Of a stretch of 64,000 nt of DNA, positions 16,906 to 51,820 are shown piece after piece; the first letter of the stretch is position 1; every line of letters starts with the position of its first letter. This DNA comes from Selaginella moellendorffii (Eukaryota; Plantae; Lycopodiophyta). A program made the translations under genes and the position numbers. The stretch is from positions 1,034,654-1,098,653 of the forward strand of contig NW_003314308.1 of the NCBI RefSeq assembly GCF_000143415.4, in the 5' to 3' direction. The notes below the pieces were generated by a model. It did not search any database. It was not told the origin of the DNA and saw only the letters and a program-made list of their open reading frames with translations.

Positions 16906-17025
16906 TGCAATCAAAGAAAATGGATTAAAAAATAGTCTATTAGAGTTTAAATATAAAGGGAAAGGTCACATGAATAAAAGTACACTCTATTTTTTAATTA
17001 ATTAAAGATTTTGGGATATATGGAG
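16906..17025 (+). repeat. Old, AT-drifted fragment of the same Cassandra LTR family
   Basis: GTTTAAATATAAAGGGAAAGGTCACATGAATAAAAGTACAC..TTGGGATATATGG aligns to the LTR's GTTCAAATATAGAGGGAAAGGGCCCATGAACAAGAGTGCAC..TTGGGATATTTGG. Confidence 0.65.
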
Positions 17026-24500: not shown

Positions 24501-25967
24501 TGAACATGAAATGAAGCAAATCTTAGCACAAACACCAAGCTACCTAAATTGGAGCACTTAGCATGAAGCAACAACAGATTTACATATGGATTGAACCAAA
24601 ACAAGAGGTTGCACACTAAATGGAATGAAGATAGAGACCTGGCAATGAAAGAACAAAAAAAAAAAAAAACAAAAAAACAAAAACAAAACTTGTAAGAGAA
24701 AGTAAATATTTTTTTATCACTTTGAGAGCAAGTTATTGTGCTTAAGGCCCCAAGACACTTCTCTTAAATGTCAAGAGTTGTTTATTTCTTAATAAAAAGA
24801 CTTTAGTCTAGCAATGAGAAAAACTAAAAGGTTTCCCTACACATGACTATCCTTTATGTTGCAGTGACTTATCTCTAAAACAAAGCATAAAATTTGGTCT
24901 ACTTAAATCAACTAAACCAACTTAAAAGACAGTGAAACTCCCTTATTATAATAATTTACTTGTAGCAATGTTTGGTTTGCTTAATAATAGTGTCATTTTT
25001 ATTTAGTATTTTTGAATAAATCAATTGATCGATAATTATAAATATGTTTATAATTTATAAATCAAGATTGATCTTATTACATATCAACCATCAGAATAAA
25101 TAAGAATATACTAGAAAGTGTATAAAATATAAAAATGTTTATAAATTATAAATATAAAATAATCTAAATAAATAACAACAGTTAAATGATAAAATATCTA
25201 AGTATATTCTAAGTATATTCACTACCTTTTAAGCAAACCAAAAAGCGTTTCGATTAGCTCGCACTCAATCCACTCCACATTTGCCATCGATCTGTACACC
25301 AAGCGTAGCCATCTGGAGACACAAAACACTGTCTCTTGGATCGCCTGCTAAACTGTTCTCCCATGGCTGTCTCAAAAAACCAGGGGAGAGTGAAGCAGCG
25401 AGGCTGGCAATGAAAGAGAAGACAAGGATTGAAAGGCATGGTCACTAAGTCAAGACCCCTAGGTGAACCCATCCCTACAGCCATCACTGAGGAGGAGCAT
25501 CCACAGAAAGAAAAGAAAGAATGAATCCAGGATTTCCACCTGATGCTCACCAAATGGGCAAAGAAGCCATGCACGGGAGAATGCTGTCCTAGAAGGAACA
25601 CTCGCAACCTAACTGCCCAAAAGATTTACGGCAAGGGGCTGCCTTGTTCACAATTCTCGAGGAGCAGCGGCATGAAACTTCACGACAGAGGAGGAGCTGT
25701 GGTTAAAAAGAAGATTTATCCCTCGCAAGTTTTCCAGGAGCAAAGGGAAAAATCGGCCACGCCCAAACATCACAAAAAAATTTCCAAGAGCACACAAAGG
25801 AAAACAATTTTTACCCAGTTCCCTCCCATCCAATTGGCCAGCCCAAGCTGTGCTGCCCTCAAACATCGTAATCCGAAGCTCCCCCAGGCCTGAGATCGGA
25901 CGGCTGCGGCAGGTTGGGAAACTGCTTCTGGATGGATAATTACTTTACTAATTGATTTAACTGGTTA

Positions 25968-29216: not shown

Positions 29217-30771
29217 TCCGAGAGGAGAGCTCTTCTTCTTCTTCCCCCTTTCCCTTCCAGAGGATTCAGGCGTGTGAGATTTCGGCTCGTGAAGGCCGAC
29301 AAGGACGATCCGGAAGAGGAGGAACCGGATGGGATTGCGGAGGAGGATGATTTCGCGGATACCATCGATCTCACGCTCGTCCAGAAGCGCCAGGCCGAGA
29401 GGCTTTGGAACGAGCTTCTGCCACTCACGATTCCCAGCGTTGGACCCGTGGTGAAGCTCACGATTGGAGAGGACCGGAAGATCGGGCTTCCAGGAATCTT
29501 ATACGTCGTTGGAAAGCTTCGAACGTTCCGACGTTCTAAGCAAGCACTCTCGGTAAGTTCGCTTCTATCTTTCCTTCCATCTTTTCTTCTAATGCGATCG
29601 ATGGTTTCTTTCTTCGATCGATCGGCAGATTCTCGACTGGCTCGCGGAAGAAAAACCATTCGGGGAATTCGACGAGAGTCTCTACAAGCTGCACATATCG
29701 ATCGCGTTCGAGGTGAACTCAGTCCACAAAGCCGAGAAGATTTTCGAGAGCGTACCGAAAGAGCTCCAGCTCCAGGAGAAGTTGCTTGGTGCCATGGCCG
29801 CTGGCTATGCCTCCGCGCACAGGATGGACAAGGTGGAAGAGATCTTGCTCCAGTGCAATCTCTCCGCCATGGAACCTTACACTGCACTGATCAAACTCTA
29901 CTTTAGAGTCGCTCTCTACGACAAAGCAGCGAGTCTCTACAAACGGATCAAAGCGGCAAAGCTCGAGCCAGACCTGGCAGCCTTCGCGGCACTGCTGCGA
30001 GAGAAGTCCAGCTTGGAGAGCTTGAAGCCGAGAGAGCTGGAAGAGGACGCCGAGGTGGCTCTCCACCATGCAGGAGCTTACGAGGAGGAATTGACGATCA
30101 AAGCCCCGGTTGCAAGCCAAGCGATGGTGGTCTCTGGCTACCTTGGAAAAGCGGCACAAGTTAGCAAGTTGTGGAAACATATCAAGCAAGAGAAGAGCTC
30201 GTCCATACCAGCGGTGTGCTACTTGAACGCGATCGAAGCGTTTGGAGCAGCAGGCAAGGTCCGATCGGCTGAGAAGGTGGCCGACGAGATGGAGATGGCG
30301 AAGTCCAAGTACGTAGAGCTCTCGGCAGCTATGATCCGCGTCTACTCGAGGAACCAAATGGCGGACAAGGCCGAGGCCGTCATCGATGACTTGCGTGCCA
30401 ACGGCGTGTGGAACTTGTTCCGGCCTCACGCCGAGCTCATCACCGGTTACCTCGACAGCAACCAGCCCGACCAAGCGATGAAAGCTCTCAAGGTGGCACT
30501 TCTCGTCAAGCTGATGAAGCCAACGTACGCCGTGATCCTGAAAATGCTGCCCGTCTTTGAGAGGCTTCGCGATGCCGAGGGTGCCGAGGACATGGTGATG
30601 AGGTACAAAGGCGCCACGGACCTCCGGATGTACAAGGGATTGCTCAGGATCTACGTGAGTGCCAAGGTGAAGCCCCTGGAAGAGATAGAAGCCCGGCTCA
30701 TGCTGAAGAAGATCCCTCTCGACGAGGAGACTCGCGAGCTGCTGACGAAGCTGAGAGGAGTCATCGGTTGA
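29082..30771 (+). CDS. P-class PPR protein (intron 29553-29628)
   Basis: Arg/Ser-rich transit peptide, acidic tract, QALS|ILDW splice, then degenerate P repeats. Confidence 0.85.
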
Positions 30772-30773
30772 GA

Positions 30774-32050
30774 TTCACTGCGCAGCAGCCTCGGCTCGGA
30801 ACGAGCGAAAACATCAGACAACGAGCAAGCCCGACTGCTTCCGGTAGCTCTCTTAAGCCTGGTGAGCCGCTCGCTCTCCACTAGCTGACTCTGGACTCTC
30901 CCAGGTGGCTTCACACCCGATGCTTAAAGCTACGTCGCTGCGCTCAAGGCCTGGTCTCGCCTAGCTGCGAATGAACAGAAGCATCGGGTGTGAAGGCGAG
31001 CTCACTAGAGAACGGCAGAGCTTTACACGGGCAGGCAGGGAAGAAACTCGGTGATATCTACTTGGCGGGCACGCTGGTGAATTTTTACTCCAAGTGTGGC
31101 AGGGTGCCTTGCTTCGACGCTGGACTTTGCAACACGCTGCTACTCGGCTACACAGAGAACGACAAGCCAGACTCGGCCTTGGAACTGTTCAAGCAACCCC
31201 CAGCGCAAGCCAGCCTCGACTGCCTCACTTATCTAGCTGCTGTGACGGCTTCCAGGAGGATAGCGGAGCCGAGAGTGGTGAATGGAAGAAGACCACTCAA
31301 GGCCCGACGCTCGCCGACGGGGTTTCATGGGACCGGGACGTGTGGAAGCCCGGTGGATTCTCGGCAAGCTTTCGGCAGGATGGCTCGGCACAGCGTCATG
31401 TCGTGGACGTCGCTGATGCTGCGATGCTCCGAGAATGGCGACGCGGAGCTGGCTCTGGAGCTGTTTTCTCGCGGTGGATTCACAGTGGACGCTGCAAGCC
31501 TCACCGCGGCTTAGATGCGCATTAGATACAGCTTCTACGTGGTTTATAAGGTTACCGTTTTCGACGTCTCTAGAGTTTCGACGTGAAACTGGCACGTCCC
31601 ACAGAGGCATGACAAATTTGACCAGCAAAGCGCTCGTTGAGTGCCATCTTCGGATTTGCGGACTTCACCAAATGGTGATAGCTGAGACTATCACGGTCAC
31701 GCTGATTACGTAGCGGCTTACAACAGTTTACTCGAGGCGCCTCAGGTCCTCTTCCAGTCCTCTCACCATTTGTGTTGCTGATTTGTTTGTAGAGGCTTGC
31801 AGAGTTTGATATCGCAAGCAACCAGCACGATATCAAACTAGAGCGATGAAAGCTCTCAAGGTGGCACAAGCCAACTTATGCAACGATCCTGAAAATGCTG
31901 CTCGTCTTGGAGAGGCTTCGCGAATGGGGATGGCGTCACGGACCTCCCAATGTACAAGGGACTGCTCAGGATCAACGTGAGCAGCAGGTTCTCGACGAGG
32001 AGACTCGCGAGCTGCTGACGAAGCTGAGGGGAGTCAGGTGGTCGAGTCGA
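30774..32050. pseudogene. Chimeric patchwork of fragments copied from four neighbouring PPR genes
   Basis: 30774-30880 resembles 32051-32150; 30880-31515 is an inverted, deleted copy of ~27340-26590; 31640-31740 has pieces of 34070-34127 and (inverted) 33889-33918; 31842-32040 resembles 30475-30768. Confidence 0.8.
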
Positions 32051-32051
32051 T

Positions 32052-33695
32052 TCACCGCGCAGCAGCTTCGGAACGAGCGAAAACGTCAGACAGGAGCACG
32101 AGCAAGCCCGACTGCTTCCGGTATCTCTCGTAAGCCTGGTGAGCTGCTCGAGTTCCACGCTCGGCATCGGCCTGGTTCCTGCAAGCTCCTAGCAAGGCCA
32201 GCCATCCAAGCGGCTCTCGTTCGGCTGGAATGCTGTGAACCAAGTCCTCTGCTTCGAAAACTCGGCCGGCCCGTCCCAGCAAATCCACCATGCAGACGTA
32301 GTGCTCCGCTGCCGGTTCTATGCCGTAGTCCGGGAGCATCGAAGTGAAAGAGGTCCAACCTTGGTCGAGGAGGCCTCCATAGCTACAGGCAACGAGTATG
32401 CAGCCGAAAGTCACCGAGTTTGGCAGCACACCGTCCAAGTCCATCTTCCGGGACAGCTCCAGAGCTTCCATGGAGTGCCCCTGCTGTGCGTACGCTGCTA
32501 CCAGCGTCGTCCACGTTATCACGCTCTTGAACTTCATCTCCTCGAACACGCTCCTGGCTTCCTCGAGTCGTCCACACTTGCCGTAGAGGTTCAAGAGCGT
32601 GTTTTGGACGACGAAGTCGGGCTTCCTGATACGAGAGTGAATCGCCCTGCCCTGCGCGAGCATCCCTTCGTTGGAGCACGCCGTGATGACAGTGGCGAAG
32701 GTGACGTTGTTTGGCACCACGCCTTCCAAGTCCATCTTCCGGAACAGAAGCACGGCTTGTCTCCCTTCGTCGTGCTGTGTATACGCCGAGATCATGGCTG
32801 TCCATGAGATCACGTTTCTTCTTTGCATCCGTTCGAAAACTTCCTTGGCCTCGACCAACCTGTGGCATCTGGTATACATGTCGATCAGCGCATTCTGGAT
32901 AGCATTGTTGTTGGAGTGAGTACCTGACGAGACGATCGCCTTGTGAATCTCTCTCCCTTCTTCGTAGCTGGAACAGGCACTGAGAACGCTCGAGAAGGTG
33001 TACTCGTCCGGCTTCACCCCTTCCGGCTCCATTCTGTGATATAGTTCCAGAGCCAAGCGCCTCTCACCACGCTGAGCGTACGCAGATACCATAGAGTTCC
33101 ACGACACCACGTCCTTCCGCGGCATAGCATCAAACGCAGCTCGAGCATCGTTCAAGCTCCCACACTTGGCATACATGTTGACGACAGCGTTGTGGAGGCA
33201 AACGTCGTCTCCAAGCTCCGCGGCCGCTGCTAAGATCTGTGAGTGGATCACTCGGCCATCGGAGAGAGCTTTGAGCTCCGAGCACGCGCCCAAGATCACC
33301 AAGTACGTGTATCTGCTCGGCTTCACGTCCATCGCTCTGAAAGCACCAAGTGCCTGCCTGGAATGCCCGTTCTGGGCATACGCCGCTATCAGGACAGTCC
33401 ACGAGAAGGCATTTTTTCTGACCAGGCCATCAAACACGAGCCTTGCCTTGTCGATGCCCCCGTGCTTGCCATACGCCTGGACCAGGACGTCCCCAAGAAC
33501 CACACTCTGTCCATAGCCATCTCTCACGATCTCGGCGTGCCTGTCGCATACCTCTTTGAGGCTTCCGGACCTTCTCAGCGATGAAGCATAGCTTTCCTCC
33601 TGGATTTTTCTCTCCACCACCGTAGCCACGTCGTGATGGCGATGCCGGACCAGAGATCTCCCGAGAGCAAAGCTCCGGTTCTTCACGAAGAACAT
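32052..33695 (-). CDS. PLS-E class PPR protein
   Basis: PLS triplets ending in HYVCMVDLLGRAGR..W.ALLGACR. First in-frame ATG is at 33695. Confidence 0.9.
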   Translation of the reverse strand: MFFVKNRSFALGRSLVRHRHHDVATVVERKIQEESYASSLRRSGSLKEVCDRHAEIVRDGYGQSVVLGDVLVQAYGKHGGIDKARLVFDGLVRKNAFSWTVLIAAYAQNGHSRQALGAFRAMDVKPSRYTYLVILGACSELKALSDGRVIHSQILAAAAELGDDVCLHNAVVNMYAKCGSLNDARAAFDAMPRKDVVSWNSMVSAYAQRGERRLALELYHRMEPEGVKPDEYTFSSVLSACSSYEEGREIHKAIVSSGTHSNNNAIQNALIDMYTRCHRLVEAKEVFERMQRRNVISWTAMISAYTQHDEGRQAVLLFRKMDLEGVVPNNVTFATVITACSNEGMLAQGRAIHSRIRKPDFVVQNTLLNLYGKCGRLEEARSVFEEMKFKSVITWTTLVAAYAQQGHSMEALELSRKMDLDGVLPNSVTFGCILVACSYGGLLDQGWTSFTSMLPDYGIEPAAEHYVCMVDLLGRAGRVFEAEDLVHSIPAEREPLGWLALLGACRNQADAERGTRAAHQAYERYRKQSGLLVLLSDVFARSEAAAR

Positions 33696-33728
33696 CACCA
33701 CAGCCGATCCATCGCGACGAACTTTCTG

Positions 33729-35553
33729 CTAAGCTGGTCGATTGGAAGGAATGAGCTGGTTGTCCGCGCATAGCTTGGGAATCGGCCTCATCTTGTTGAG
33801 AAGCTCGAACGTTCTCGCATTCGGTGCCACTTTGTCTGTTGCCATGCGCTGCAAGAACCGGTACGCATGCTTGCCGGCGTTCACGTATGCCTCGAGCAAA
33901 CTGTTGTAAGCCGCTACGTTCTTGTTGTATGATTCCCTCCTCATGTCCTGGAAGAGAAGCTCCGCGCTGCTCACGTCGGCGTTTTTCGCGTGTTCTTTCA
34001 GGATGAGCATCACGGTGTCGAAGCACGGCGGGACGCGCTCCTCGAACATCCTGTTGAGTGTCTCGGCTGCCATCTTCGGATTTCCAGACTTCATGTATCC
34101 CGCAACCAAATGGTGATAGCTGAGATTGTTGATATGCCCGTTTCCATGCCGGATTCTCTCGAGCAGCTTCTCGGCCTTTCCCATCTCACCACCTTCGCAG
34201 TACGCACGAAACAATGGGACGTAGTGCGCCGGTCTCAACAGAGTTCTCTTCTCGGTCAGCTCCGCAAACACCTTCTCGGCCCTGTCGATCCGTCCCACTT
34301 TCTCGTAAGCTGCTATAGTAGCAACATAGCTGTTTGCCGAGACCACTGGAAACCTTCGCGTGAATCTCCATATCCTGTCGATCATATCGGCTCTTCCCAT
34401 TGCAGCGTAGAGTGCTATCACCTTATCGTGAACTCTCCGGCTCTCTTGAAACTCCTCGCTGGCCACCGCCTCTTTCAAGTATGCCATAGCTTTCTCGTGA
34501 TCACCAGCGTTCACGTATCCCGACGCGAGCGTGCAAAGTATCTCGCAGTTTGGAGTTCCATCTCCATCGCACTTCATTTTGCTGAAGAGTCTTTCCATGC
34601 CTTCGGTGTCGCCCTTCTTGGCCTTTATCCCGATGAGGATGTTGTAAGTCTCGACGTTTGGAGAGATGCGCATGTCTCTCATCTCCCTGAGAATCACTGG
34701 AATGCCGTCCTCTTTCTTCTTGTTGGCATAGAGATGGAAGAGCTTGTTAAACGCCGTGGCGGTGGTGAGGAGGTTCTTCTCCTTCATCAGCTTGAGCACC
34801 AGCCTTGCCTTTGAAAGGAGCGAGTGAATCACGTAGTTCTCGAACATGGTGATGAGAGCAGCCTCAGATTTGGCATAGACGCGCGGCATTTTGGTAAGGA
34901 GGAAGTTCTTCGCAGCGTTCATGTTGACGACCCGTCCGGTAAGGTCCAAATGGTTGATGAAATGGAACTTTTGAAGCTCCAAACTTCTCTCTTTGATCAC
35001 CCAGTCCGAGATCTGGAAGAACTCTATGTTAGAACTCTACTCGATCTTTCAAAGACAAAGAAGAGCTCTCTATCTACTCAAACTTCCCAAGAACAAAGCA
35101 GAGCTCTCTAAGATATAGAATGAAACATACCTCGTAAGCTTGCTTGAATCTTCCAAGCCATTTTAGACGCTTCATAGCAGCAATGATCTCCCCGTGGCTC
35201 TCCCGGCCTTCCGCGATCCACTGATGCAAAATGTGTAGCACAGGTCCTCCTTTATCATCTTCGAGCCTTGCGACGAGAGAATTCGGGTCCACATTGTCCT
35301 CGTCGTCGCTCGGGGTGACTCTACTGGCATCGTAACGCAAATCATTCTCCTCAGTGCCCCAGTAGCGATCATGCTCGTCGCTCTTCCTGTTCCTCACAAT
35401 ATCCTGTTTGGGCCTTCCTCTCAAATCCCTCGAGAAACTCAAGCTCCTCGCAAAATCCAGCACCTGCGCGATTCTCCTTCCAGGAGCCACGGAATAGCCT
35501 AGAAGATCCTTTCCTTGCAGCGCATTCCTGGAGACGATCATCCATGCTCGCAT
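33729..35553 (-). CDS. P-class PPR protein (intron 35130-35013)
   Basis: Presequence-like N-terminus, QAYE|ISDW splice, P repeats (SPNVETYNILI etc.). Confidence 0.88.
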
Positions 35554-35763
35554 TGCGCGGAGAATTCAGCGCCAGGAATCCATTTCCTTGCTTGCTCACA
35601 AACCCTAATAAAAACCTAGCCAACGGTCAGATATGGGGCTTACGAAATCAACGGCTGGGATCGAAGATGGGAAGGGGCCAAAAGTTTTGCCCAAAACCCT
35701 TCGAAATATTTTGGGGCGGGACGGATGGGAAGAGGAGCTGGGAATCGCAATCTCAAATCGGCG

Positions 35764-36782
35764 ATGCCCGGGGCGCTCGATCTCCCGGAGTCGATCATCG
35801 CGTCGATCCTCTCTCACACTTCTCCAGGTGATGTAGCAAGGCTAGCGCTCGTGAATCGAGCTTTCAGGGATGCCGGGCGCACGGACATCGTGTGGGAGCG
35901 AATGCTGCCGGTCGGCTACCACAGATTTCTCAAGCTCGCCATTTCTTCCATCGGCGGCGGTGGCAGTTCTTCCAAGCGGGAGCTGTACGAGCAGCTGTGT
36001 GGACACATTCTCATCGGAGACGGATCAGAGGTTCTTTCTCTTGGGAAAAATATTTGATCTAAGCAAGAATCCTAGTAAGAAGCGCTTTCTTTAGGTGATC
36101 CTCTCTGGCTCATAAATTTTTTTCTCGCTTTCTCCAGGGCTTATGGATCGATCGAGCTACTGCGGCTGTTTGCCACAGCTTTTCTTCGAGATCTTTGGCT
36201 GTGACTTGGGGAAGCACCGCGGAATACTGGGAATGGTCCTCAAAGCATGGCGCCAGGTACTTAAGTTCCATTCACGAAGAGTTTCTCTTCTCATGGATTT
36301 TTCTTGCTTCGCTACCACAAAGATTTGGCGAGGTGGCGCACCTCAAGATGGTTTGCTGGCTAGAGCTCTCTGGGAACTGGAAGTTGAGCCTAGCTCCAGG
36401 AACTTACACCGTCTCTTGGAGACTCCAGCTCGATTCCGACGCCTTTGGGTGGGATAAGGAACCAGTGAGATTCAGCTTGGCAACTCTAGACGGAAGGGTG
36501 ACGAACTCTTCGTGCTACCTGGTGGACTCCGAGGGGCTGGATCGAAGCAGCAGTGACGAGTCGGAAGAAGACGACGAGCCTGTCAGCATGGTTGCTCGAG
36601 CTCGGACGGTGGCGGACAATTGGGTGGAGTATGATGTGGGACAGATTGTCGTGGAGGACGAGGATGAATTGGGTGAAGTGGAGCTTTTCTTCTCGCTACA
36701 GGAGATCGTCAGTGGCACTTGGAAAGGTGGACTTTTTATTGACGGGGTCATTGTCCAGCCCAGTCACCTCATTGTGGAGTAG
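35764..36782 (+). CDS. F-box protein with phloem protein 2 (PP2/Nictaba-like) domain; introns ~36031-36138 and ~36258-36321
   Basis: LDLPESIIASILSHTSPGDVARLALV (F-box); VTWG...YWEW, FGEVAHL.MVCWLE and WKGGLFIDGV (PP2). Confidence 0.9.
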
Positions 36783-36875
36783 GGTTCTTGAGGGCGCTTC
36801 CATTCCAGGTTTGGGAACTTCTGTTCGTGGGTCTTTGGTCTTGAATTGTTCTGTGTCTTTCAAGGATCCAGCGCC

Positions 36876-38723
36876 ATGGATAGCGGAGTTGCCGAAGGTG
36901 CGTGAATCTTCTTGTTTTTCCTGGAGCTAAGTGTTCTTACATGAGTGCTTCCAGGTGCTGGGAAAGTGTACATTGATGGCAACATGCTTGCCGTCAAGGC
37001 TCTTGCAGCAGCAGGAGTGGAGACCATGTACGGCGTCGTTGGCATTCCGGTGACCTCTCTCGCGACTTACGCCATGAAGGTTGGGATAAAGTTCATCGCT
37101 TTCCGGAATGAGCAATCAGCGGGATATGCAGCGTCAGCAGCTGGTTTTCTGACTGGTAAACCGGGAGTTTTGCTCACAGTCTCGGGACCAGGTTGCGTGC
37201 ACGGGCTTGCGGGTCTGAGCAATGCAATGATCAATACGTGGCCCCTGGTGATGATCTCTGGGTCCTGCACGCAGAAGGATATAGGGAAAGGTGACTTCCA
37301 GGAGCTTGATCAGATGGAAGCTGTGAAACCGTTTGTCAAATACTCGGGCAAGGCTAGCCAGATTTCTGAGGTTCCCGAGGTCGTATCTAAAGCTTTTCAA
37401 GTCGCTCTGGAAGACCAGCCGGGAGGGACATACATCGATCTTCCTTCCGACGTTCTTCATGAGAACATTTCCGTCGAGGAGGCCGAGAAGTTGCTTGCGG
37501 GGGTGAAGGCTGCGAAGCCGATGTTCTCTCGCGAGCTGGAGTGCCACTGTTCCGAGTCAGACATTCAGGAGGCGTTGTCTCTACTCCACAAAGCCGAGAA
37601 GCCGCTGGTGGTTTTCGGGAAAGGTGCAGCTTTAAGCCGTGCGGAAGGTGCGATCAAGCAGTTTGTCGAACGGTCAGGAATACCATTTCTAGCAACACCA
37701 ATGGGCAAGGGAGTCATTTCGGACACGCACCATCTTTCTGCTGGGGCTGCTCGTTCGCTGGCACTCCGTGAGAGTGATGTTGCACTGGTAATTGGAGCTA
37801 GATTAAACTGGCTACTACACTTCGGCGAGCCTCCACAGTGGTCCGATTCCGTTAAGTTCATCTTGGTCAACACTTCTAAAGAGGAAATGGAACTACGACG
37901 CCCGGCTGTGAAACTCGTTGGCGATGCAAGGATGGTTATGACGGACCTAAACAAACAGTGGAAGGACTCTCCTTTCTCTCTAGGCGACAAGCATCCTTGG
38001 GTGGAGAAGTTGAAGAACAAAGCCAGTGACAGCGTCGAGAAGATGGCTGCGAGGCTGAAGCAGGACGTCGTTCCTTTCAACTTTTTGACTCCGTTGAGGA
38101 TTATTCGCGATGCGATCTCGTCTTTAGGCTCGCCAACTCCTATCCTCGTCTCCGAGGGAGCGAACACCATGGATATAGGACGGACTGTCTTTCAACAGCT
38201 AGAGCCTCGAACGAGACTAGACGCTGGTACATGGGGAACGATGGGTATCGGGATGGGCTATGCAATTGCCGCTGCCGTGGAATCACCAGGGCGCTTAGTT
38301 GTTGCTGTCGAGGGAGACTCTGGCTTTGGCTTCAGTGGTTTCGAACTGGAGGTACGTCTTTTTTTTTCTTTACGCTAAGTAGCATGGTTTCTTATGTTTT
38401 GGCTGCAGACAATAGTTCGATACAACCTCCCGATCGTGGTGATCATCTTTAACAACGATGGAGTGTATGGTGGCGATCGGAGGACTCCGGAAGACAAAGA
38501 GGGCCCACTCAAGGACTTCCCGGCACCGACGTCCTTCATTCCGTGCGCTCGCTATGACAAAGTGATGGAAGCGTTCGGTGGCAGTGGCTACTTTGTGAAA
38601 GAGCCCAAGGAGCTGGAGTCTGCAGTGAACGAGGCATTTGCAAGCAAGAAGCCAGCTCTGATCAACGTTAGAATCGATCCATTTGCCGGCTCGGAGAGCG
38701 GCAGAATGCATCACAAGAACTAA
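36876..38723 (+). CDS. HACL: 2-hydroxyacyl-CoA lyase / oxalyl-CoA decarboxylase-like ThDP enzyme; introns 36898-36954 and ~38352-38408
   Basis: MYGVVGIPV, FRNEQSAGYAA, LDAGTWGTMG and ThDP motif GDSGFGFSG..E..IIFNN. Confidence 0.92.
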
Positions 38724-38797
38724 ACCCGGCACAGGTTTGCGTGTCTAGTGTTTTTCACTACTACTCTTTCCATGTAAAATAACAGGTTCCAGGGAAT

Positions 38798-40932
38798 TCA
38801 GAGAGCCTCAGTTGCTTGGGCCTCAGACTTGTCCCCGGACTTCATCTTCCGGAGCTCACTGAAGAGGATATCAGTCTTCGCGTTCGGCCGTGCACCGTCC
38901 TGGAGCATCCTCTCAACGAATCCATACGCCGGTCTCTTGGCATTCACGTAAGCCAGCAGCAGCTTGTTATACACCGCACTGTTCACCCAGTAACCCGCCA
39001 GCTTCCAGTCCTCGAGGATCTGCTCGGCCCTCTCCACGTCCGGGATCGCAGCCAGAGCTCCGAGAACAAGCGTTAGAGAAGCAGGCAGCGGCCTCGACCT
39101 CGGGTTCCTGGTACCAGTCACCTGGGACTCCCTCAACCAAGTGATCGCTTCCTCGGTATTGCCAGCTTTGAGGTACATGTCGACGAGGTGGAAGTAGCAC
39201 CAGGGATCCATCTGGACGCCGAGCTCCTCCTTCATCCTGCGCACCAGCTCTTCGGCCCGAGCAGTTAGCCCGAGGATGGAGTAGACGTACAACATGGCAC
39301 TGAACATCGGGGAGCTGCCAAGTTTTCCCAGGCTCTCGGCGTCCTTGAACAGCCTCTCGGCCCTCTCGACTTCACCGAGCTTCCCCCACGACTTGATGAC
39401 GCAGATGAAGTCCTGGCTGATCGGGTCCCCGAGCTTGAGCAGCTCCTTCCAGGCTCGCTGGACGCCGGCCGGGTTCTTGACGGTGGCGTACATGGTGATG
39501 AGCGTGTTGTAGGCGGTCCGGAGCTTTGGAAACTGGCCGATCTCCATACCGTGCTCGATGGTCTGGAGGACAGCGAGAGCTTTGTCGAAGAGCTCGTCGC
39601 TGGCGTAGCAGCTCGCCATGGTCACGTAGGTGGAGATGTGGGCTTTCTCGTGCCGGCTCGACTTGATGCCTTGGAAGGCTTGCTCCGCGGACTCGATGCC
39701 TTCGACCTTGTACTTGGCGGACAGAAGGATGTTCTCGGAGCACATATCCAGCTGAATCCCGAGCTCCCGAGCTTCGTCCGCAAGATTGAGCACCTTCTCC
39801 TCGAGACCTCTCCGGCGGTAGAGCGTGGCCATCAAGTTGAAGGTGTAAGGGGTGGTGATCATCTTCTCATCCCGGAGCTTTTCGTAGACGACCTCGGCCT
39901 TGCGCAGCATCTTGGACTTGGTGTATGCCAGCAGCAGCGCGTTGTAAGCCTCCTCCTTCTTGTGCTCGTCCGGGAGCTTTTGGAAGATCCTCTCGGCCAT
40001 TTGGTACCAGCCGCAACGGCCATGGAGCTCCACTCTGCGAATGTCGTCCTTGATCTCGTGAGGAACTGGCTTCTTCGCTGCCATCCAGTTCGCGATCTGT
40101 GCAACAAAGAAGAACAAAATGAGTCGACAAGAACTTGGAAGCTCTAAGATGAAGTTGGTATCATCCAGGAGGTAGGAAGTTTCTTCGAGAGGGATGGAAG
40201 CTTGGAGGAACTCGAATGGATCATGGTCTACAAGAACTTGGAAGCTCTTGATCACTATAGAAGCTTGGAAGAACTGGAATGGCGTGCTCAAAGAAAGAGA
40301 AGAAGAGATTCTAAGAACTTCGTATCATCCAGGAGGTAGCAAGACCTTACTCTAGAAGCTTGGAAGAACTCGAATGGAGGAGTGAGCAAAGAAAGAGGAG
40401 AAGAGCTTCTTACCTTGACGGCATGGACGTGGCGATTGCGCTTCTTGAGCTTGCGAATGACGAACAAGAAGGTGTGCTTGGTGGCCAGGTTTCCCTCCTT
40501 GATCCACTTCCTCACCTCGGGGACAACCAGCGAGACCTGTGTGCGCTTGAGCCTGGCGATGTTACTGGCGAGATGCGTCGCCGCCGGGTAATCCACATCG
40601 TCCCAGTAGTCATTCTCCTCGTACTGATCCTCCTCCTCCTGCTCCTCCTCGATGTCGTGAATCGACCGCGTGTCCAGCTCCGAATCGCTGCTCTCCTCCT
40701 GCTCTGCCAGCATCTCCTTGATCATGGATGATTCCGACTGGCAGCGCGCTGTGGCGATCCCGGAGATGGATCTTCTGGAGGGAGAAGAGAGGAGGAGAGG
40801 ATAGAAGTGGCACCTGCTTAAATTCGAGAATGACGGTGGCCTCGCGATGACGTCGAGCGAATACGAGCAAGAAATCGAAGAGAATGCCGCCATAGCTCGG
40901 CACACTCGCAATCCTCCACTGCTCATACCCAT
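38798..40932 (-). CDS. P-class PPR protein, probable plastid transit peptide (intron 40413-40097)
   Basis: Ser-rich N-terminus, acidic tract, HAVK|IANW splice, P repeats. Confidence 0.88.
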
Positions 40933-41031
40933 TTCAAGGTTTGGGGTTTATCTTCCCCAAGAACCCTAATTCACATTAAACAAATAATTCACAAATAAAG
41001 CTTTTATTAACCAAAGTAATTTTCATGGCAT

Positions 41032-41103
41032 GGAGGTATAGCTCAGTGGTAGAGCAATCGGCTGCAGTCCGATAGGTCACCAGTTCGATCCTGGTTGCCT
41101 CCT
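41032..41103 (+). tRNA. tRNA-Cys (GCA)
   Basis: Acceptor stem GGAGGTA/TGCCTCC, D arm TAGCTCAGTGGTAGAGC, anticodon arm ATCGG-CTGCAGT-CCGAT, T loop GTTCGATC, U73 discriminator, downstream T-runs. Confidence 0.95.
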
Positions 41104-41183
41104 AATAGTCTTTTGCGACTTTAAATTTAATTGGACTACTTTTTACTTTTTTACTGCAGGATTTTAGGGATTAGGGTTTTGCG

Positions 41184-43120
41184 ATGAGAGGATGGATGCT
41201 GCTGCGACGGATTTCCCAGGCCGGGCAATGCAGCCTCTTGCGGCGCGATGCGGGCAGCGATCGATCGTTCTCCAGCATTCTTGCCGCCAGAGCGCATTCT
41301 TTCTCTGTTTCTAGCCGGAGCGCGGAGGAGCAGGATGATTTCTCCGATACCGACACCGGTTTTGCGCACAAGCTCGCCAAGCAGGCGGCTAAGATGGAAT
41401 CTCCCAAGCTCGTGGATCTGTGTAACAAGATTGCGGCGCTGCGGCCAAGGGATTCCGGTCACGTAGTGCCGATGTTGAAGGAATGGGAAGAGGAAGGCAA
41501 TGTGCTCGACAAGGAGATGCTTCGAGCGATCATGCTCAAGCTCCGGAAGTGGAAGCGTGGATCTCTCGCCCTCGAGGTACTGTACAAACAATGCGAATTC
41601 TTCCTTTGGTTCCTTCTTTTGTTTTCTCCCTTGTAATGTTGTGCTACCATTTTTTTTCCCGGTGATTCTTTCGTTTCTCGAGTTTTTCTTCTATTATTCA
41701 AGAATTTCACTCCTTTTTTTCCTTGACTTGATCGTTCTCCTCGTTCCTTTCTTGAGAAATTACTTTCTTTCCAATGACGAATGCTCAAAGTTTTTGGTTT
41801 TTCTAACTTTCTCACATTCGAACTCCACAGGTTGCCGATTGGATGTATTACACAAAACAGTTCCCGCAGGATCTGGACGACGTTATCCTCCGAATGGACA
41901 TGGCTGTGCGTGCCAAAAAGATCCGGAGAGCTCAGAAGATTTTCAAGAAGCTTCAGGCTTGGGAAAAGACGACCGACGCGTACAACACGATGTTCTTGAT
42001 CTTCTCCCAGCGCAAGATGATCCTCCATGCCGACGACTTCTACTACAAGTTTAAGGAGGCCAAGCTGAAGCCCAACGATATCACTTTCAGCATACTGGCT
42101 TGCCTCTACCGGCGGTGTGGCCTGCACAACAAGGTGGTGAGGCTCCAGGAAGATATCGAGGCAGCAGGCATGAAGCCGTGCGTTTGCTTCCTGAACAACT
42201 TGATGGTGTCCAAGTACGAGCTTCACGGGATTTCTTCGGCCGAAGAGATTTTCAACCAACTGGTTCCTGCGGGATCTGACCTCAAACGCTCGCACTTGTC
42301 TACGTACTCGATGATGGCTGCCTCGTATTTGTCCGCGGGAATGCACGACAAGGCCCAGAACTTGTTAGAGGTGATCGAGAAAGCCATGGACCAAGGCAGC
42401 TTTCCAAAGCTGCGGAGGACGTATCACATACTTATCTCCATGTACAGCACCATGAAGAACAGGGATGGTATGGAGAGAGTCTGGAAGAAGATCGAAGACT
42501 TGAAAGCGCAGGACTACGTTGCTATGATCGAATCTTGTGGTCGAGCAGACGAGGTTGGTTCCGCCGAGAAGTACTTCAAGGAGGCGGACAGGAAAGGCTT
42601 GCTCAACCAGCCATCCTTGTTTGCGGCACTCTTAGGCGTCTACGCTGGGAAAGGACAGGCAGACAAGGCCGAAAAGCTCTTCAAGAAGATGAAAGAACAG
42701 GATGTTTCCCGGGACGCGCTGTGCTACCACTACATCATTCTTGCTAACCTCAACGCCAGAAACATCGATCGCGCGGTGGAAATCTTGGAGCTAGCAGAGG
42801 CTGCTGGAATGCGGGATGGACGCTCGAGGCCATTCCTAGGAACGTTTTGTGACGTTCTCAAAACGATTGCCAGAGAGACAGGGGATGTAGCTCTGGCCGA
42901 GACATTGCTGGCGGACTGGAGGAAGGGAAAGTATAGAACCGACATCGCGGTCTACAATCATCTTCTTCGGGTCTACTTGAAAGCTGGGAAGCAAGTCCAA
43001 GGCCCCTTCCTCAAGAGACTGGCTGGGAACAACATGAAACCCACACGCGAAACTCACCAGCTGCTCCAGCAGCTCAGTGACGCTGGCGGAGAAGTCGTGA
43101 CTGGCAACTATTATCTCTAG
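41184..43120 (+). CDS. P-class PPR protein, probable mitochondrial presequence (intron 41577-41830)
   Basis: LALE|VADW splice; P repeats. Confidence 0.88.
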
Positions 43121-43197
43121 ATTATCAGGTACATGGTTTACCTTTTCTTTCTTTTGGTGATGTGGGTCATTGTGAGCTGAGTTCTTTCTTGCAGGGA

Positions 43198-45012
43198 ATG
43201 TTGGCTGCTGTCATCGTTGTTCCAGTTGCGACGACCTTCGTTGCAAATCCTTGGAGCAGAAATAGAGCCAGGTGTCCGGCTTTAGTTTCAGCTCCATGGC
43301 TGGCTGGGGCAGCAGCCAGCCGGACAGCTACACAGGTTTTGGGTTCGCAACACATCGCACAACAGGCTAGACAGCAGGAAGAGGAGGACGAAGAGGACTA
43401 CGGTGCACAGAAAGAAGACTATGAGGATGTCGAGGATGAAGAAGATGCGGCCGATGAGCTGGGGAAGATTTACGAAAAGGATGAAGCCCGGCTGGCTGGT
43501 GTAGATTTTAGCGCTGCCCAGCAGCTGTTGGAGGCTATTTGCGAGCTCAAAGACGAGCAATACATTCGCGTCCAGAGAATTGTGAGAGGATGGCTCAGGT
43601 CGAGAGACGTGGAAGTGGGGAAGCACGAGTTTGTATACGTGATGAGGCGACTGAGAAAGCGCAAGAGAGTCAAGCATGCACTAGAGGTACTGAGTGTTTC
43701 TATTTTTTTCCTTTGAAGATGGATTGTTTTCTTTTCTTTTCAGATTGCGGACTGGATGGCTCTCTCGAGACCAAGACCCTTCACTCTAACTACGAAGGAC
43801 AATATTTTTCGAATGGACCTGGCTTCTCGCTGCGGATCTGTTGGCAAGGCCGAGAGGATCTTTGAGCGTCTCGCACCAGAGCACAGGTCCGAAGTTGCTT
43901 ACAACGCTCTTCTTCTCAGCTACACCAAGAAAAAAAAACGGGGACGGGCCGAGAGACTTTTCAAAGAACTCAAAGCCACTGGTACCATCTCGTCATGCTA
44001 CAGCCTGAACCTCCTGGCTTCGATGTATCGCCAGCTCCGCCTAGACGCGGAAGTTCTTATGTTGGCAAAGGAAGCACAGAAGTTGGGAGTTGAGCTCGAT
44101 ATGTGCTTCTACAACCTCCTCCTTCCAGCAAAGTTTAGAGTCCAGGGCCTGGAAGACGTTGAGAAGCTCTACGCTACAATCACTTCTCCCAGGGACAGGA
44201 CACGGTTCTTCACTTGCCTGGCCATGGCAAACATTTACGTCTCGGCTGGGAGGAACGACAAAGTGCTAGAGATGCTGGAGCTAATCGACCAAGGAATGGA
44301 AGCAGGGACGATAGTAAAGCAGCGCAGGAGATACAACGTCCTCATTTCCATGTACGCTTCGCTCGAAGACGGTGCTCGGGTGGAGAGGACGTGGGAGAGG
44401 CTTAAGCAGCAGCGACAGCCAAACACCGAGGACTACTGCTGCATCATCCGAGCCTGGGGGAAGCTTGGACACGTCGTCAGAGCCGAGACGATCTTCCAGG
44501 TAGCCGAAGCCAACGAGAAGAGCCTCAAGTACTCGACGGTGTTTAACGCCATGATGTTCGTCTACTCGGTCGCGGGGATGCGCGAAGAGGCCGAGGGGCT
44601 GGTCCGGAGGATGGAGTACGAGCTGGGTGTGAAGCTGGATCCGTGGTGCTACCACCATCTAGTGCTGCTCTACGCCAAGGCCGGAGACATCGGAAAGATG
44701 CTATCGACTTTGAGAGCTGCTCAAGCCTGTGGGAAGAAAGAGCGGCGATTCACGCCGCTGGCGGCTACTCTGTGGGCTGCTCTCAACACTCTGGCGGATG
44801 CCGGGGACGTGGATACCGCCGAGGAGACGCTGACGAGGTGGAAGAGGTCGGGCTACCGGGTTACCACGGGGTTGTATAACAGGCTACTCAGGGCACACTT
44901 GGTTGCGGCCAGGCCAACGGAGAGATTCGTGGAGAGGATGCTTGCGGATGGAGTCGTGCCCAATGGTGAGACGGAGAAGCTGTTCAATGAGCTCAAGATG
45001 AAACTATCGTAA
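43198..45012 (+). CDS. P-class PPR protein (intron 43687-43743)
   Basis: Transit peptide plus acidic tract, HALE|IADW splice; close paralog of the 38798-40932 gene (shared DPWCY and LDMC blocks). Confidence 0.88.
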
Positions 45013-45268
45013 GCATCGTATCAAGTTTACATGGTGAAGGAGTGATGAACAGAATGTTAGCGAAGAACTTTGGTGGTGGAGATCCAAGTGTTGCAAAGAA
45101 CGCAAAGAATGGAAATACAATTTAGAGAATGAGAGAACAAGGAGGCCTTGTTCTTCATCTCTATATACAAGAACACCTTAAATTCTTCTTCACTGGAATA
45201 TTTAAGCATATTCTACACAAAGGGTTTAGGGTTTATCACTGTAAGAGGAATATTCTCTAAATATCCCC

Positions 45269-47420
45269 CTAGTTGAAAACTTCTAGCTTCTTGAGAAGTT
45301 TGTGAGTAGTCTCGTTGGGCTCCAGCTTGGCCTCCTTGATGCGATTCTCGATCCCCCAAGCCGGCTTCTGGCACCTCCGGTACACCTTGAGCAGCGCATT
45401 GAAGAGCCTGATATCGTAAGGATAGTGCTTCGTCTTGAGCACCTTCTCCACCATCTCCTCGGCTTTCTCCAGCTCCTTCTTCCCGGCGTAGGCCTCCAGC
45501 AGCGTCAGCACCGTGACGAAGAGTGGATTCTTGAAGCCTTTGGCCAGGCCTTTCTCCTCCGCCTCGCTAAACTTCTCCGTGGCCTTGACGAACTGGTGCC
45601 TGTTCACGTAGCCGGACACCAGGTAGTGGTAGCCCTTGAATCCCAGCTTGTACCGCAGCTCCTCCATCTTCTTGGCCGTTCTCTCAGCGTCGTTCATGAG
45701 GCCGTTCATGCAGTAGACTTTGAGCATCGTGAAGCACTGCCTCTCCGAGAGCTTCTGATTCTGAGCTTCCAGTTGCTTGCAAATCTCCTCGAACTGCTTC
45801 ATCTCGCCGTTCATGCCGAAGGACTCGATCGCCGCCAGGAAGTAGGACTCGGGCATGTACTCGGCCACTCGCTTCTGCTCCCTCCAGAGCCTCTCCACGT
45901 CCTTCTTCTTTCCCATGGCGCCGTAGAGCCGGATCAGGTTCCTCCACTCGAAGCCTGTTGGTATCTTGTCCACGTCCAGGAAGAACTCCTCGATCGTGTC
46001 CTCCAGATCGTCCATCCCGAGCGCGTCCCGGCTCTTCAGCAGGTTCAAGTACGTGAAGGCGTCGGGAGCGACGTTGGACTTGTCCTTGAGCTCCGCAAAC
46101 ATCTCCTTGGCCTCGTCGATTAGGCCCATCCGGAGGTACATGGCGATGACGAGGTTGTAAGAGTAGGAATTGGTGATGAGAACCAGCTCCTTCATCTGCT
46201 TCAAGACGTCTAGAGCTCTTTCTTTCCTGTGGGCCGTCGCAAAGGCCTGGAGGAGCAGGACGTAGCACGTCTCAGTCTTGTCCTGGATCCGGTTGAAGCA
46301 AGTCAGCACTTTGTCCACCTTCAGCTCTCGAGTGTGGAAATCCATCCGGACCAAGTGATCGAAGTCCGTCAGCTGGAATGGCTTCTCCACGATGACCCAG
46401 TTCATGAGCTGGAAGGAAAAGAAAAACGTAAGAACGAAGCGAGAAGAAAACAAAGTTGGATCGAGCAAAGAGAGCGGAGAAAACAAAGCTGGATCGAACA
46501 AAGAGAGGAGGAAAGCAAAGTTGGATCAACCAAAGAAAGGGGAGAAAACAAAGTTGGATCGAGCAAAGCGAGCGGAAAGTTGAATAGCGCAAAGAGAGGA
46601 AAAAACAAAGCTGGCTAGAGCAAAGAGAGAGGAGAAACCAAAGTTGGATCAAGCGAAGAGAGGAGAAAGTAAAGTCGGATCGTGCAAAGAGTGGAGATAA
46701 CAAAGACTGAAAAGACTGAAGCAAAGACTGAAAAGAAAACAAAGTTGGATCGAGCAAAGAGAGAGAGGAAAAACCAAAGTTGGATCAAGCGAAGAGAGCG
46801 GATCGTGCAAAGAGAGGAGATAACAAAGTTTGAAGCAAAGACTGAAAAGAAAACAAAGTTGGATCGAGCAAAGAGAGAGAGAGAGAGAGAGAGGAGAAAC
46901 CAAAGTTGGATCGAGCAAGAGAGAGCGAACTTACTTTCATTCCTTGGAAGTAGAACATCCGAGCGTGGAGCCGGATGATGAGCTTGTAGATCACATCCCT
47001 TGTGACGAGATTGCCTTCGCTTTGCCAATCCTTGAGCGCTGCAACGATGTCTCTATAGTTGCTTGGCTCGGCCTTTTTCCAAATCGCGTCTATGTGAGAC
47101 TGCAGTGTACCGCTCGACGGTGGGATGGGAATCAGCGGCATCCGTGGCTCCCGCATTTCGTGTTCCACGAAGAATTTCTCCAGGGAGCGATCGTCCAGGG
47201 GTAGGACATGGAGCGCTCGCGTTCCTGGCGCTAGCACTCGCGCTGCTGGGGAGAAAACCCAGTGCCGGTTCACTGGCACGATCGATCGAGCCGGGACAGC
47301 GATTCTTGCTCCAGAGCTAGACAATGCTGGTTCTGGCGCCGCGATTGCGCTCGCGAAATGCCGCCTGTAGAAGAGAGGAGCTAGAGAGAATGCGAATGCA
47401 AGACGAGGAGGACGTACCAT
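45269..47420 (-). CDS. P-class PPR protein (intron 46934-46409)
   Basis: ATG at 47420 (MVRPPRLAFAFS), QGMK|LMNW splice, P repeats. Confidence 0.85.
46440..46925. repeat. Intronic minisatellite, ~30-35-bp unit AAAACAAAGTTGGATCGAGCAAAGAGAG
   Basis: More than 10 degenerate copies; explains several spurious low-complexity ORFs. Confidence 0.85.
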
Positions 47421-47493
47421 CGCCGCGCTTGGCGTCCCAGCCGATGCATCGCTGATAAACCCTAAACCCGGCCGGATTTTAGGGTTCTTGGGG
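47421..47493. promoter_or_regulatory. Very compact bidirectional promoter with opposed telo-boxes
   Basis: TAAACCCTAAACCC-GGCCGG-ATTTTAGGGTT lies between divergent ATGs at 47420 and 47494. Confidence 0.6.
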
Positions 47494-49173
47494 ATGGGAG
47501 CTGGAAGAGCGACGCTGCGTATCGCCAGGGCTGCGAGGTAAGACACCGATCACTAGTATGAGAGTGTAACTCGCTCACTTGCTCCTCCAGATTTCTTCTC
47601 AGGCCGGCAGCGAGCACGCCTATCGCTCGACCAAGAGCGGCATTCTCGTTTCTTGGCGAAAGGAATGTGGAGACAGTAGCCAGGGGTTGGATGAGCTCTG
47701 GATTCTATCTCCAGCAGCAGCGGCATTACACCGACGATGTGGAGTTCCAGGATGCTGGGGACGATCTCGTGGTTTACGATCCAAGAGCGTCGCGGAGGTC
47801 TCAAGGGAGCGGTGACGCTCTTGAGGACCTGTGGACAAAAGTGGATTACTCACAGGATCCAGTGTTGGGGATCAAACAGTGGGAGAGATCCGGCAACAAG
47901 CTCACGAGATCGATGCTCGCTATGCTTCTTCAAAGAATGAGGTGCCGACGAATGCACACCAAGTCCGTCCAGGTGAGACCTCTCAAGTTACTTGTTCTTC
48001 TCGCTCAAGAGTGATCGATCGGTTTTTTTTTCTTGTGGATAGATTCTTTCATGGCTCGTCGAGAAAAAACCCATCGAGGTGACCGAAGGAGACTACGAGC
48101 AGCTGGTCACCTTGGCTTGCCGCGACTCGGACTATGAGACCGCAGAGAAGTATTTCTATAGTCTCCCGAGTCACTTGAGCAAGTGGCCAGCGTTTTCGGC
48201 GCTCGTCGCCGGCTACGCATCCAGGAACTTGATGGCAAAGGCCGAGAACTTGATGAGAACGGGGACCTCGCCTCTGCCGCAGCCATACTCGGCGATGATT
48301 CTCATGTACATCCGGAGGGCCGAGTACCAGAAGATCGTCAAGATCTACAAGAGTATGAAGGCGGACGGGATAGAGCCCAACGTGATAACTTACGCGGTGC
48401 TGCTGAAGTTCAAGGACAGGATCGGGCCGATCAAAGGACTGGAACAAGACGTTGAGGACGCGCTGGGAAAGATCAAACTCAGTGAGATGTGCGCTGCGAA
48501 GAGGCCAGCGATTGCCGGGAACATGATGCACTGCTACGCGATGCTTGGGAAGCTGGACAAAGTGGAAGAAGTGTGGCAGCAAATGGACCAAGAGCGTCGG
48601 CTCCCAGAAGGTTTCTTCGTCATGGCAATTGAGTCTCTTGCGCTACTGGGACAAGTGACCAAAGCTGAGAAGGTTGCACAGATGAAACCAACCGCGAACG
48701 TCCAGGCTCGGCTCTTACAGGCACTGGCTCGTCACTTCGCCAAGCAAGGAAACATGAAGAGAGTGGAGGAAATGCTGGGCCGTGCCGACAGATACGAGCT
48801 GACACCATCTTTCGGGATTTACAACTATCTCGTCACCGGGTACTTGGCCAGGAAGGACCCCCAGACTGCGGCCTCGAGGATGAGATTGGCGTTGAAAGTG
48901 GTGACCGAAGAGCGAGCAGTGCCATCTTATGCCGCTGTCACGGGATTGCTTCCATATCTAGCAGCGGAGAAAGACGTGACGACTGCCGAGCAAATGGTGC
49001 GGAGGTATAGAGGCTGGACGGATGACAACTTCCACAAGCTGCTCCTTAATGTCTATGTAGAAGCTGGGAAAGGACCGTCTCCGGACATAAAGTCGAGGTT
49101 CAGGCGCCTTCCCTGCGTTGGTCACGTCGAAGCCAGGCGGCTGGCTATCAAGGCCTTCGCGTTAGAACCATAG
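47494..49173 (+). CDS. P-class PPR protein; introns 47538-47590 and 47973-48042
   Basis: Spliced presequence MGAGRATLRIARAAR|FLLRP, KSVQ|ILSW splice, P repeats. Confidence 0.82.
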
Positions 49174-51099: not shown

Positions 51100-51820
51100 T
51101 TGGACAAAGTGGAAGAAGTGTGGCAGCAAATGGACCAAGCTCCCAGAAGGTTTCTTCGTCATGGCAATTGAGTCTCTCGCGCTACTGGGATAAGTGACCA
51201 AAGCTGACCACAAACGTCCAGGCTCGGCTCTTACAAGCACTGGCTCGTCACTTCGCCAAGCAAGGAAACATGAAGAGAGTGGAGGAAATGCTGGGCCTTG
51301 CCGATAGATACGAGCTGACACCATCTTTCGGGATTTACAACTATCTCTTCACCAGGTACTTGGCCAGGAAGGACCCCCAGACGGATGAGATTGGCGTTGA
51401 AAGTGGTGACCGAAGAGCGAGCAGTGCCATCTTATGCCGCTGTCACGGGATTGCTTCCATATCTAGCAGCGGAGAAAGACGTGACGACTGCCGAGCAAAT
51501 GGTGCGGAGGTATAGAGGCTGGACGGATGACAACTTCCACAAGCTGCTCCTTAATGTCTATGTAGAAGCTGGGAAAGGACCGTCTCCGGACATAAAGTCG
51601 AGGTTCAGGCGCCTTCCCTGCGTTGGTCACGTTGAAGCCAGGCGGCTGGCTATCAAGGCCTTCGTGTTAGAACCATAGCGATTGCTGCGGTGATACTACG
51701 ACTACTGGTAACTATATCCGTCTCTCTTTTGCCGGCTGGTCCTGACTCTTTTGTTCAAATCCAGGAGTACTTTTCTTCTCTTAGCGACGTCAAACGGACC
51801 TCCTCGTAGCTGCGGTTATG
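51100..51820 (+). pseudogene. Duplicated 3' part and 3' flank of the 47494-49173 PPR gene, with deletions and stops
   Basis: Near-identical to ~48553-49312. Confidence 0.88.

Follow-up and report, generated by a model that had tools for sequence, protein, structure and literature searches.

Land-plant nuclear genes are taken as monocistronic, and the exceptions known to us are either microprotein-plus-protein pairs or rare read-through isoforms that are targeted by NMD. The CDC26-TTM3 type is a conserved bicistronic nuclear mRNA of land plants with two conserved ORFs, the upstream one being a microprotein of uORF size that is compatible with leaky scanning or reinitiation. In Arabidopsis, read-through RNAs have been reported for 271 loci, of which 158 show intergenic splicing and 28 have a PPR/TPR gene in first position; alongside the ordinary monocistronic mRNAs such RNAs make up ~0.06% of transcripts, NMD degrades them, and translation of the second ORF is rare (Kurihara et al. 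2022, PMC9768141). Polycistronic nuclear mRNAs have also been described in green algae (Gallaher et al. 2021, PMC7896298; Duenas et al. 2025, PMC11892635), where the upstream ORF is short, with a median of 600 nt in Chlamydomonas, and ribosomes reach the second one by leaky scanning (PMC7896298). For Selaginella, a literature search of incomplete coverage found no paper on polycistronic, dicistronic or read-through RNA.

Here we describe two neighbouring PPR genes of Selaginella moellendorffii, termed A and B, whose spacer contains an intron that is spliced out in assembled RNA. All coordinates (Table 1) refer to the window, the whole 64,000-nt stretch of DNA that was analysed.

Table 1. Coordinates of the features in and around the A-B unit
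Feature	Position	Strand	Basis
tRNA-Cys (GCA)	41032..41103	+	ARAGORN; Rfam tRNA 66.7 bits
Telo-box TAGGGTTT, 5 nt before the ATG of A	41172..41179	+	Motif scan
Gene A exon 1, 131 codons	41184..41576	+	Translation, N-terminal exon alignment, RNA contig cover
Gene A intron, 254 nt, phase 0, GT..AG	41577..41830	+	Skipped in 4/4 runs; depth inside zero
Gene A exon 2, 429 codons + TAG, P-class PPR array	41831..43120	+	Pfam, At1g60770 match
8 exonic nt (attatcag) from the stop of A to the 5' splice site	43121..43128	+	Sequence; kept in contigs
Spacer (intergenic) intron, 66 nt, GTACAT...CTGAG...TTGCAG	43129..43194	+	Spliced out in 4 runs from 4 studies
3 exonic nt (gga) from the 3' splice site to the ATG of B	43195..43197	+	Sequence
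Gene B exon 1, 163 codons	43198..43686	+	Translation, alignment
Gene B intron, 57 nt, phase 0	43687..43743	+	Skipped in contigs, 4/4 runs
Gene B exon 2, 422 codons + TAA, P-class PPR array	43744..45012	+	Pfam, At1g60770 and P0001 matches
A-rich 3' UTR of the A-B unit; fragment ends ~45088 and 45177	45013..45177	+	Composition, motifs, adapter letters

A and B are two complete protein genes on the same strand, each having its own start and stop as well as an N-terminal exon homologous to that of the other, and their ORFs comprise 560 codons (1683 nt) and 585 codons, respectively. The TAG of A (43118-43120) is followed by the 77-nt spacer (43121-43197) and the ATG of B (43198-43200), which is the sole in-frame start ahead of the end of B exon 1. 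The first exon of A encodes an Arg-rich, presequence-like N-terminus, an acidic stretch and a conserved helix ending in ..LALE, and that of B an uncharged hydrophobic N-terminus, a long acidic stretch and a conserved helix ending in ..HALE. Both align with the N-terminal exon of P0001, the divergent neighbour of gene A (38798-40932, minus strand), over a presequence-like start, an acidic stretch and a conserved basic helix, and the three genes share their intron position between ..ALE and V/IADWM... The Pfam models PPR, PPR_2 and PPR_3 scored above cut-off in both second exons, and PPR_long in that of A; no Pfam hit to an E or DYW domain was obtained in either. A and B are 31% identical over their full length (E 6e-71).

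Both proteins resemble the mL101/rPPR4 (At1g60770) and PPR596 (At1g80270) family, a group of small P-class PPR proteins of mitochondria, in which they align end to end with At1g60770 at E ~1e-26. With the Arabidopsis mitoribosome structures 6XYW and 9EVS as reference (6xyw_AO; 9evs_1t, mL101/rPPR4), residues 14-416 of A match positions 89-488 (E 8.5e-27) and residues 11-418 of B match positions 84-488 (E 2.6e-26). Further likenesses to this family are the ..ALE/VxxWM.. junction and an acidic region behind the N-terminal presequence. Differences are the low identity, such that the likeness is one of similarity and implies no claim of orthology, and the arrangement of three paralogs in one 6-kb cluster, two of them joined by a spliced spacer. 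Judged from their sequences, A and B are complete, old paralogs of a mitochondrial-type P-class PPR family. The first-pass annotation of this DNA had suggested a mitochondrial transit peptide for A and a plastid one for B. The plastid guess is unsupported, given that both proteins match the mitoribosomal At1g60770 end to end and that P0001, the closest paralog (a 605-aa S. moellendorffii protein, 46% identical to B exon 2), bears the RefSeq name 'At1g80270, mitochondrial-like'. The N-terminus of B is hydrophobic and then rich in Ser, Thr, Ala and Arg, with no acidic residue among the first 60, and is ambiguous as a predicted targeting signal.

B is a living gene under purifying selection. Among the variant sites within B that distinguish the contigs of four sequencing runs from the window, 11 of 16 are synonymous, against an expected synonymous share of 23-34% (P 1.4e-4 to 4.7e-3). 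The variant sites of these four runs are very unevenly divided between the two genes, with one in gene A (41253, Gly>Ser) versus the 16 in gene B. A two-allele bubble (44988, 44998, 45025 and +G at 45046) is seen in 4/4 runs, and both haplotypes of the 3' end of B are thus expressed.

Twenty sequencing runs match this stretch, and 16 of them, from nine studies, contain at least half of the sampled words; the evidence consists of their Logan contigs, and the label 'RNA?' attached to all runs is a guess only. Contigs of four runs (X1, X5, X7 and X8), each from another study, were aligned over 40700-45500. A contig lacking exactly 66 nt with GT..AG borders was found in every one of the four, the joint being reported as 43125>43192; its position is ambiguous by 3-4 nt, and it is equivalent to 43128>43195. 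One contig each in X1, X7 and X8 (3357-3442 nt) starts at 41191 or 41254, ends at 44987 and skips 254, 66 and 57 nt at GT..AG borders; in X5, a run of lower depth, a single contig from 42652 to 44987 crosses the spacer splice. Depth in the bin 43115-43275 equals the share of the spliced contig to the decimal (46.0, 6.5, 35.6 and 14.4 in the four runs), which leaves zero contig cover for the spacer intron, and no contig of the four runs covers any base of 43129-43194. Depth is also zero inside the intron of gene A (41666-41826) in 4/4 runs, and intergenic DNA is uncovered except for the tRNA; the runs therefore behave as RNA and not as DNA. They are independent samples, since SNPs differ between them.

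The spacer intron has a 5' site cag/GTACAT (the slash marks the splice site), a CTGAG motif at 43177-43181 followed by a T-rich tract, and a 3' site TTCTTTCTTGCAG/g. Its GC content is 0.41 versus ~0.52 in the exons, and the AG/GTAC 5' site is common to it and the internal introns of A and B. Splicing reduces the spacer to 11 nt (attatcag + gga). We are nearly certain that this intron is real, and it is efficiently spliced. The first-pass annotation had predicted it from the letters alone, and did so with coordinates that are correct to the base: the 66-nt interval is spliced out in the contigs of four runs from four studies, the CTGAG motif and the T-rich tract are in place, the spliced spacer is the 11 nt that it gave, and its two full-length P-class PPR ORFs are both complete, RNA-covered two-exon genes with homologous N-terminal exons. 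Its view of the pair as a dicistronic candidate is consistent with the unbroken contigs that lead from A into B in four studies, although contigs across two genes can also arise by merging of overlapping transcripts.

Based on these contigs, we propose that the main product of the locus is probably a bicistronic A-B read-through RNA with intergenic splicing, which is the sole form assembled in the four studies. Pol II would start at the telo-box promoter of A (~41170-41190), just behind the tRNA-Cys gene, and transcribe A and the T-rich, A-poor 77-nt spacer, which would provide no usable poly(A) signal. Transcription would run on through B and terminate in the A-rich region past it (~45090-45180). 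Once the three introns are spliced out, the intergenic one included, the product would be a ~3.5-kb RNA consisting of ORF A, 11 nt and, in another frame, ORF B. Both the single molecules spanning the two ORFs and the start and end positions of the unit are what we infer from the contigs.

Sequence motifs around the two genes are consistent with such a unit. Two full telo-box matches occur in 40700-45400, at 41172 and at 45227, the latter downstream of B; a telo core also lies directly before the ATG of the paralog P0001 (40963), 31 nt away. A motif scan detected neither a telo box nor a TATA element in the 1.9 kb preceding B. The first base of the gene A contigs lies at 41186-41191, and in X1 adapter letters stand right before it, which implies a very short 5' UTR. 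The spacer is 16% A and 44% T and holds no AATAAA-like hexamer. The 165 nt past B are 36% A with AATACA at 45114, and adapter letters behind 45088 (X7) and 45177 (X1) mark fragment ends. With no promoter motif before B and no poly(A) signal in the spacer, A seems to have no terminator of its own and B no promoter. The contigs of the four runs are free of loose poly(A), adapter or leader letters at 43000-43300, and no contig, branch or loose end marks an RNA start or end there. Assemblers clip short dead-end branches, and the same contigs would be expected from a B-only mRNA starting in the last few hundred nt of A together with A mRNAs ending in or just past the spacer. Mean word depth in X5 is 7.6-8.0 over the 5' part of A versus 11.1 over the 3' end of A plus B, a rise that either 3' bias or some additional B-only RNA could produce.

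Compared with the Arabidopsis read-through type, the A-B locus similarly comprises two complete same-strand nuclear genes with an intron that extends from past the first stop to just before the second start. Organelle-targeted and PPR proteins are encoded in both cases, PPR genes being over-represented in Arabidopsis as first genes, and in both splicing removes the site where the first gene would otherwise terminate. Unlike that type, the gap measures only 77 nt and a separate terminator or promoter is not recognisable; moreover, spliced read-through is the only assembled form in four studies, whereas in Arabidopsis such forms are rare isoforms. The best reading is that A-B belongs to the intergenic-splicing read-through type, the two complete genes and the intergenic intron being present and single molecules across both ORFs being presumed from the contigs.

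The green-algal polycistrons are similar to A-B in their very short inter-ORF distance (11 nt after splicing, based on contigs), in that both ORFs are conserved protein genes, and in the apparent lack of a monocistronic form. However, the upstream ORF of A-B is 1683 nt long with 35 ATGs, so that leaky scanning cannot apply, its inter-ORF region is made by splicing, and the lineage is that of a vascular plant. Two conserved ORFs are shared with the CDC26-TTM3 type, from which A-B departs in that A and B both exceed 550 codons. As for operons of the nematode and kinetoplastid type, which are resolved by a common spliced leader joined at the 3' splice site ahead of the downstream ORF, leader letters before 43195 are absent from the contigs of the four runs. 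A-B is thus distinct from the Arabidopsis and algal kinds in its long ORFs, in a gap made of one intron plus 11 nt, and in that no monocistronic form is visible.

The exons of A contain 35 ATGs upstream of that of B, in all frames, which excludes leaky scanning; this route was rejected on account of the 560-codon upstream ORF and its ATGs. Reinitiation after an ORF of 560 codons is normally very inefficient or negligible. Since B is under selection as a coding gene, it must be translated from something, and the remaining routes would be termination-reinitiation 11 nt past a long ORF, which would be unusual, or a minor B-only mRNA hidden from the contigs. We regard translation of B from the A-B read-through RNA as rather doubtful; purifying selection on B supports it in an indirect way only. 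A still stricter version, in which the RNA would be obligately bicistronic and a promoterless B would have its 585-residue protein made from the second position, 11 nt past the 560-codon ORF, seems unlikely, at around one chance in four.

Lying 8 nt past the stop of A, the spacer intron would place an exon-junction complex within ORF A, from where the terminating ribosome would clear it, and this placement is compatible with functional design. The A-B RNA carries NMD triggers by position, namely an exon junction ~500 nt past the stop of A and a 3' UTR of ~1.9 kb. By these position rules it should be destabilised as an NMD substrate, yet it is the form that is assembled.

The genomic surroundings are densely packed. 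The tRNA-Cys(GCA) gene occupies part of the 251 nt that separate P0001 from A; it lies 80 nt upstream of the ATG of A, and a TTTT run is present at 41113-41116. RNA contigs over this tRNA continue into other flanks, which indicates a multi-copy gene, and a tRNA-mRNA co-transcript is not seen among the contigs, none of which links tRNA-Cys to gene A. An Rfam scan of 40000-46000 (E 0.1) returned this tRNA only; the spacer intron gave no match to a snoRNA or any other known RNA. Upstream of A, a string resembling a 3' splice site (tttttacttttttactgcag/g, 41140-41160) lies 25 nt before the ATG and echoes ttctttcttgcag/gga before the ATG of B; it shows no sign of use, as the RNA contigs start downstream (41186-41191). 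Plant telomere-like repeats flank the cluster (GGTTTAGGGTTTA at ~45222-45234, GGTTTGGGGTTTA at 40939 and ACCCTA at 40963); the copy at 45227 lies behind the 3' UTR of B, and no gene start is called there.

Further gene pairs in the window are similarly close. The stops of a HACL-like gene (plus strand) and of P0001 (minus strand) converge at 38723/38798, 74 nt apart, and those of B (plus strand) and the next PPR gene (minus strand) at 45012/45269, 256 nt apart; RNA contigs of the latter neighbour reach 45047 and overlap the 3' UTR of B. A same-strand PPR-PPR pair at 32052-35553 (minus strand; GenBank calls of 568 aa and 547 aa) has 33 nt between its genes, and these too may be co-transcribed or form overlapping units. 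At 51101-51437, 26867-27318 and 30717-30873, parts of the PPR cluster occur again with 86-89% identity (blastn against the window), which points to recent local duplications. Two AT-rich blocks (14001-18000 and 22001-26000; GC 0.29-0.36) stand out in a window otherwise at GC 0.45-0.58 and may be transposon or repeat islands.

This compactness is relevant to the strongest alternative to a shared RNA, in which A and B are two overlapping units: B would start inside the 3' coding region of A, the 66-nt intron would be a 5'-UTR intron of B, A mRNAs would be cleaved in or shortly past the spacer, and the shared sequence would merge the contigs. Coding regions here lie 33-256 nt apart on both strands, with convergent stops separated by as little as 74 nt, and at such density UTRs and promoters must overlap neighbours anyway. 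An mRNA of this kind would allow B, so hard to explain as a second ORF, to be translated by ordinary scanning, with one ATG (43034) counted in the last 95 exonic nt before B; this ATG is in the frame of A and would give a 28-codon uORF. Pyrimidine-rich patches at ~42959-42969 and ~43004-43013 could serve a plant core promoter, and the somewhat higher X5 depth on the B-containing contig points in the same direction. Most second genes at the Arabidopsis read-through loci have their own start sites (PMC9768141). The motif scan, however, revealed no recognisable promoter element (telo box or TATA) before B, unlike the situation at both paralogs, and the spacer is without an A-rich poly(A) signal. 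None of the four runs displays an RNA start or end, a branch or a loose end at 43000-43300, and the ATG-free zone before B, at only 95 nt, is not longer than chance would give (P ~0.2, an estimate). Overlapping units are thus a possible explanation that we hold to be clearly less likely than the shared A-B RNA.

A second alternative retains a dicistronic precursor that would be processed into two monocistronic mRNAs, through endonucleolytic cleavage or because a leader is trans-spliced to the 3' splice site at 43194. The layout recalls that of nematode operons, with a gap of ~100 nt and 3 nt between the 3' splice site and the ATG of the second gene, and the problem of how B is translated would be solved. 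Spliced-leader trans-splicing is not known from land plants. Moreover, the cis-spliced form is the one that is assembled, and no contig carries foreign leader letters before 43195, a weak negative given that contigs drop rare forms. We consider this kind of processing very unlikely.

The public annotation offers a third alternative, a single gene for one double-PPR protein. The window comes from GenBank scaffold GL377612.1 (GCA_000143415.2), whose reversed sequence is 100% identical over 18,135 nt to window positions 30798-48932. This record treats exactly 41184-45012 as a single gene whose product has 1138 aa; its makers thus also saw one unit. Given the two RNA-supported internal introns, a product of this length needs a third intron of 101 nt, and the sole 101-nt GT..AG interval spanning the stop of A (43094-43194, gaa/GTCGTG) gives exactly 1138 aa by deleting the last 8 codons of A and its TAG. 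In the RNA contigs, however, the 5' site is 43129 and not 43094 in 4/4 runs, and the stop of A is retained. GTCGTG is also a poor 5' site compared with GTACAT, B has a presequence-like N-terminal exon of its own that is homologous to those of A and P0001, and the 11 nt of the spliced RNA leave B out of frame with A, which likewise ruled out a fusion by stop-codon readthrough. The 1138-aa model is contradicted by RNA and falsely fuses two genes; splicing at 43094 may still yield a minor isoform, and a single fused gene is highly improbable as an account of the locus. Annotation as one 1138-aa product, beyond the searched length range, also explains why A and B are missing as separate proteins: word-index protein searches with their second exons retrieved P0001 only, and an exact look-up of the ATG-started ORF in the second exon of B returned no record.

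That the joint is an artefact (a chance GT..AG, an assembly error or a processed DNA copy) can be dismissed as scarcely credible: although the 'RNA?' labels are guessed and the evidence is made of contigs, the same joint recurs in four independent studies together with two further exact GT..AG joints, introns and intergenic DNA have zero depth, and SNPs that differ by run speak against a single data set.

A false fusion of the kind seen in the public model is likely to affect further intron-bridged pairs, and it distorts gene counts and analyses of the PPR family in the reference lycophyte. At the A-B locus, two full-length, selected protein genes lie 11 nt apart in the only RNA form assembled, so that a shared message is probable, which is rare in land plants. 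If the obligate bicistron were true, it would need termination-reinitiation or another non-scanning mechanism, and we know of no description of such a mechanism for cellular plant mRNAs. The spacing of 11 nt would then be functional, as would the position of the intron 8 nt past the stop, and A-B would exemplify an operon-like organisation of intron-bridged genes that extends across the genome of a vascular plant. Should single molecules confirm the bicistron, Selaginella would become a tractable case in which either the A-B RNA escapes NMD, with ribosomes restarting after a long ORF, or a promoter acts inside the coding sequence of its neighbour.
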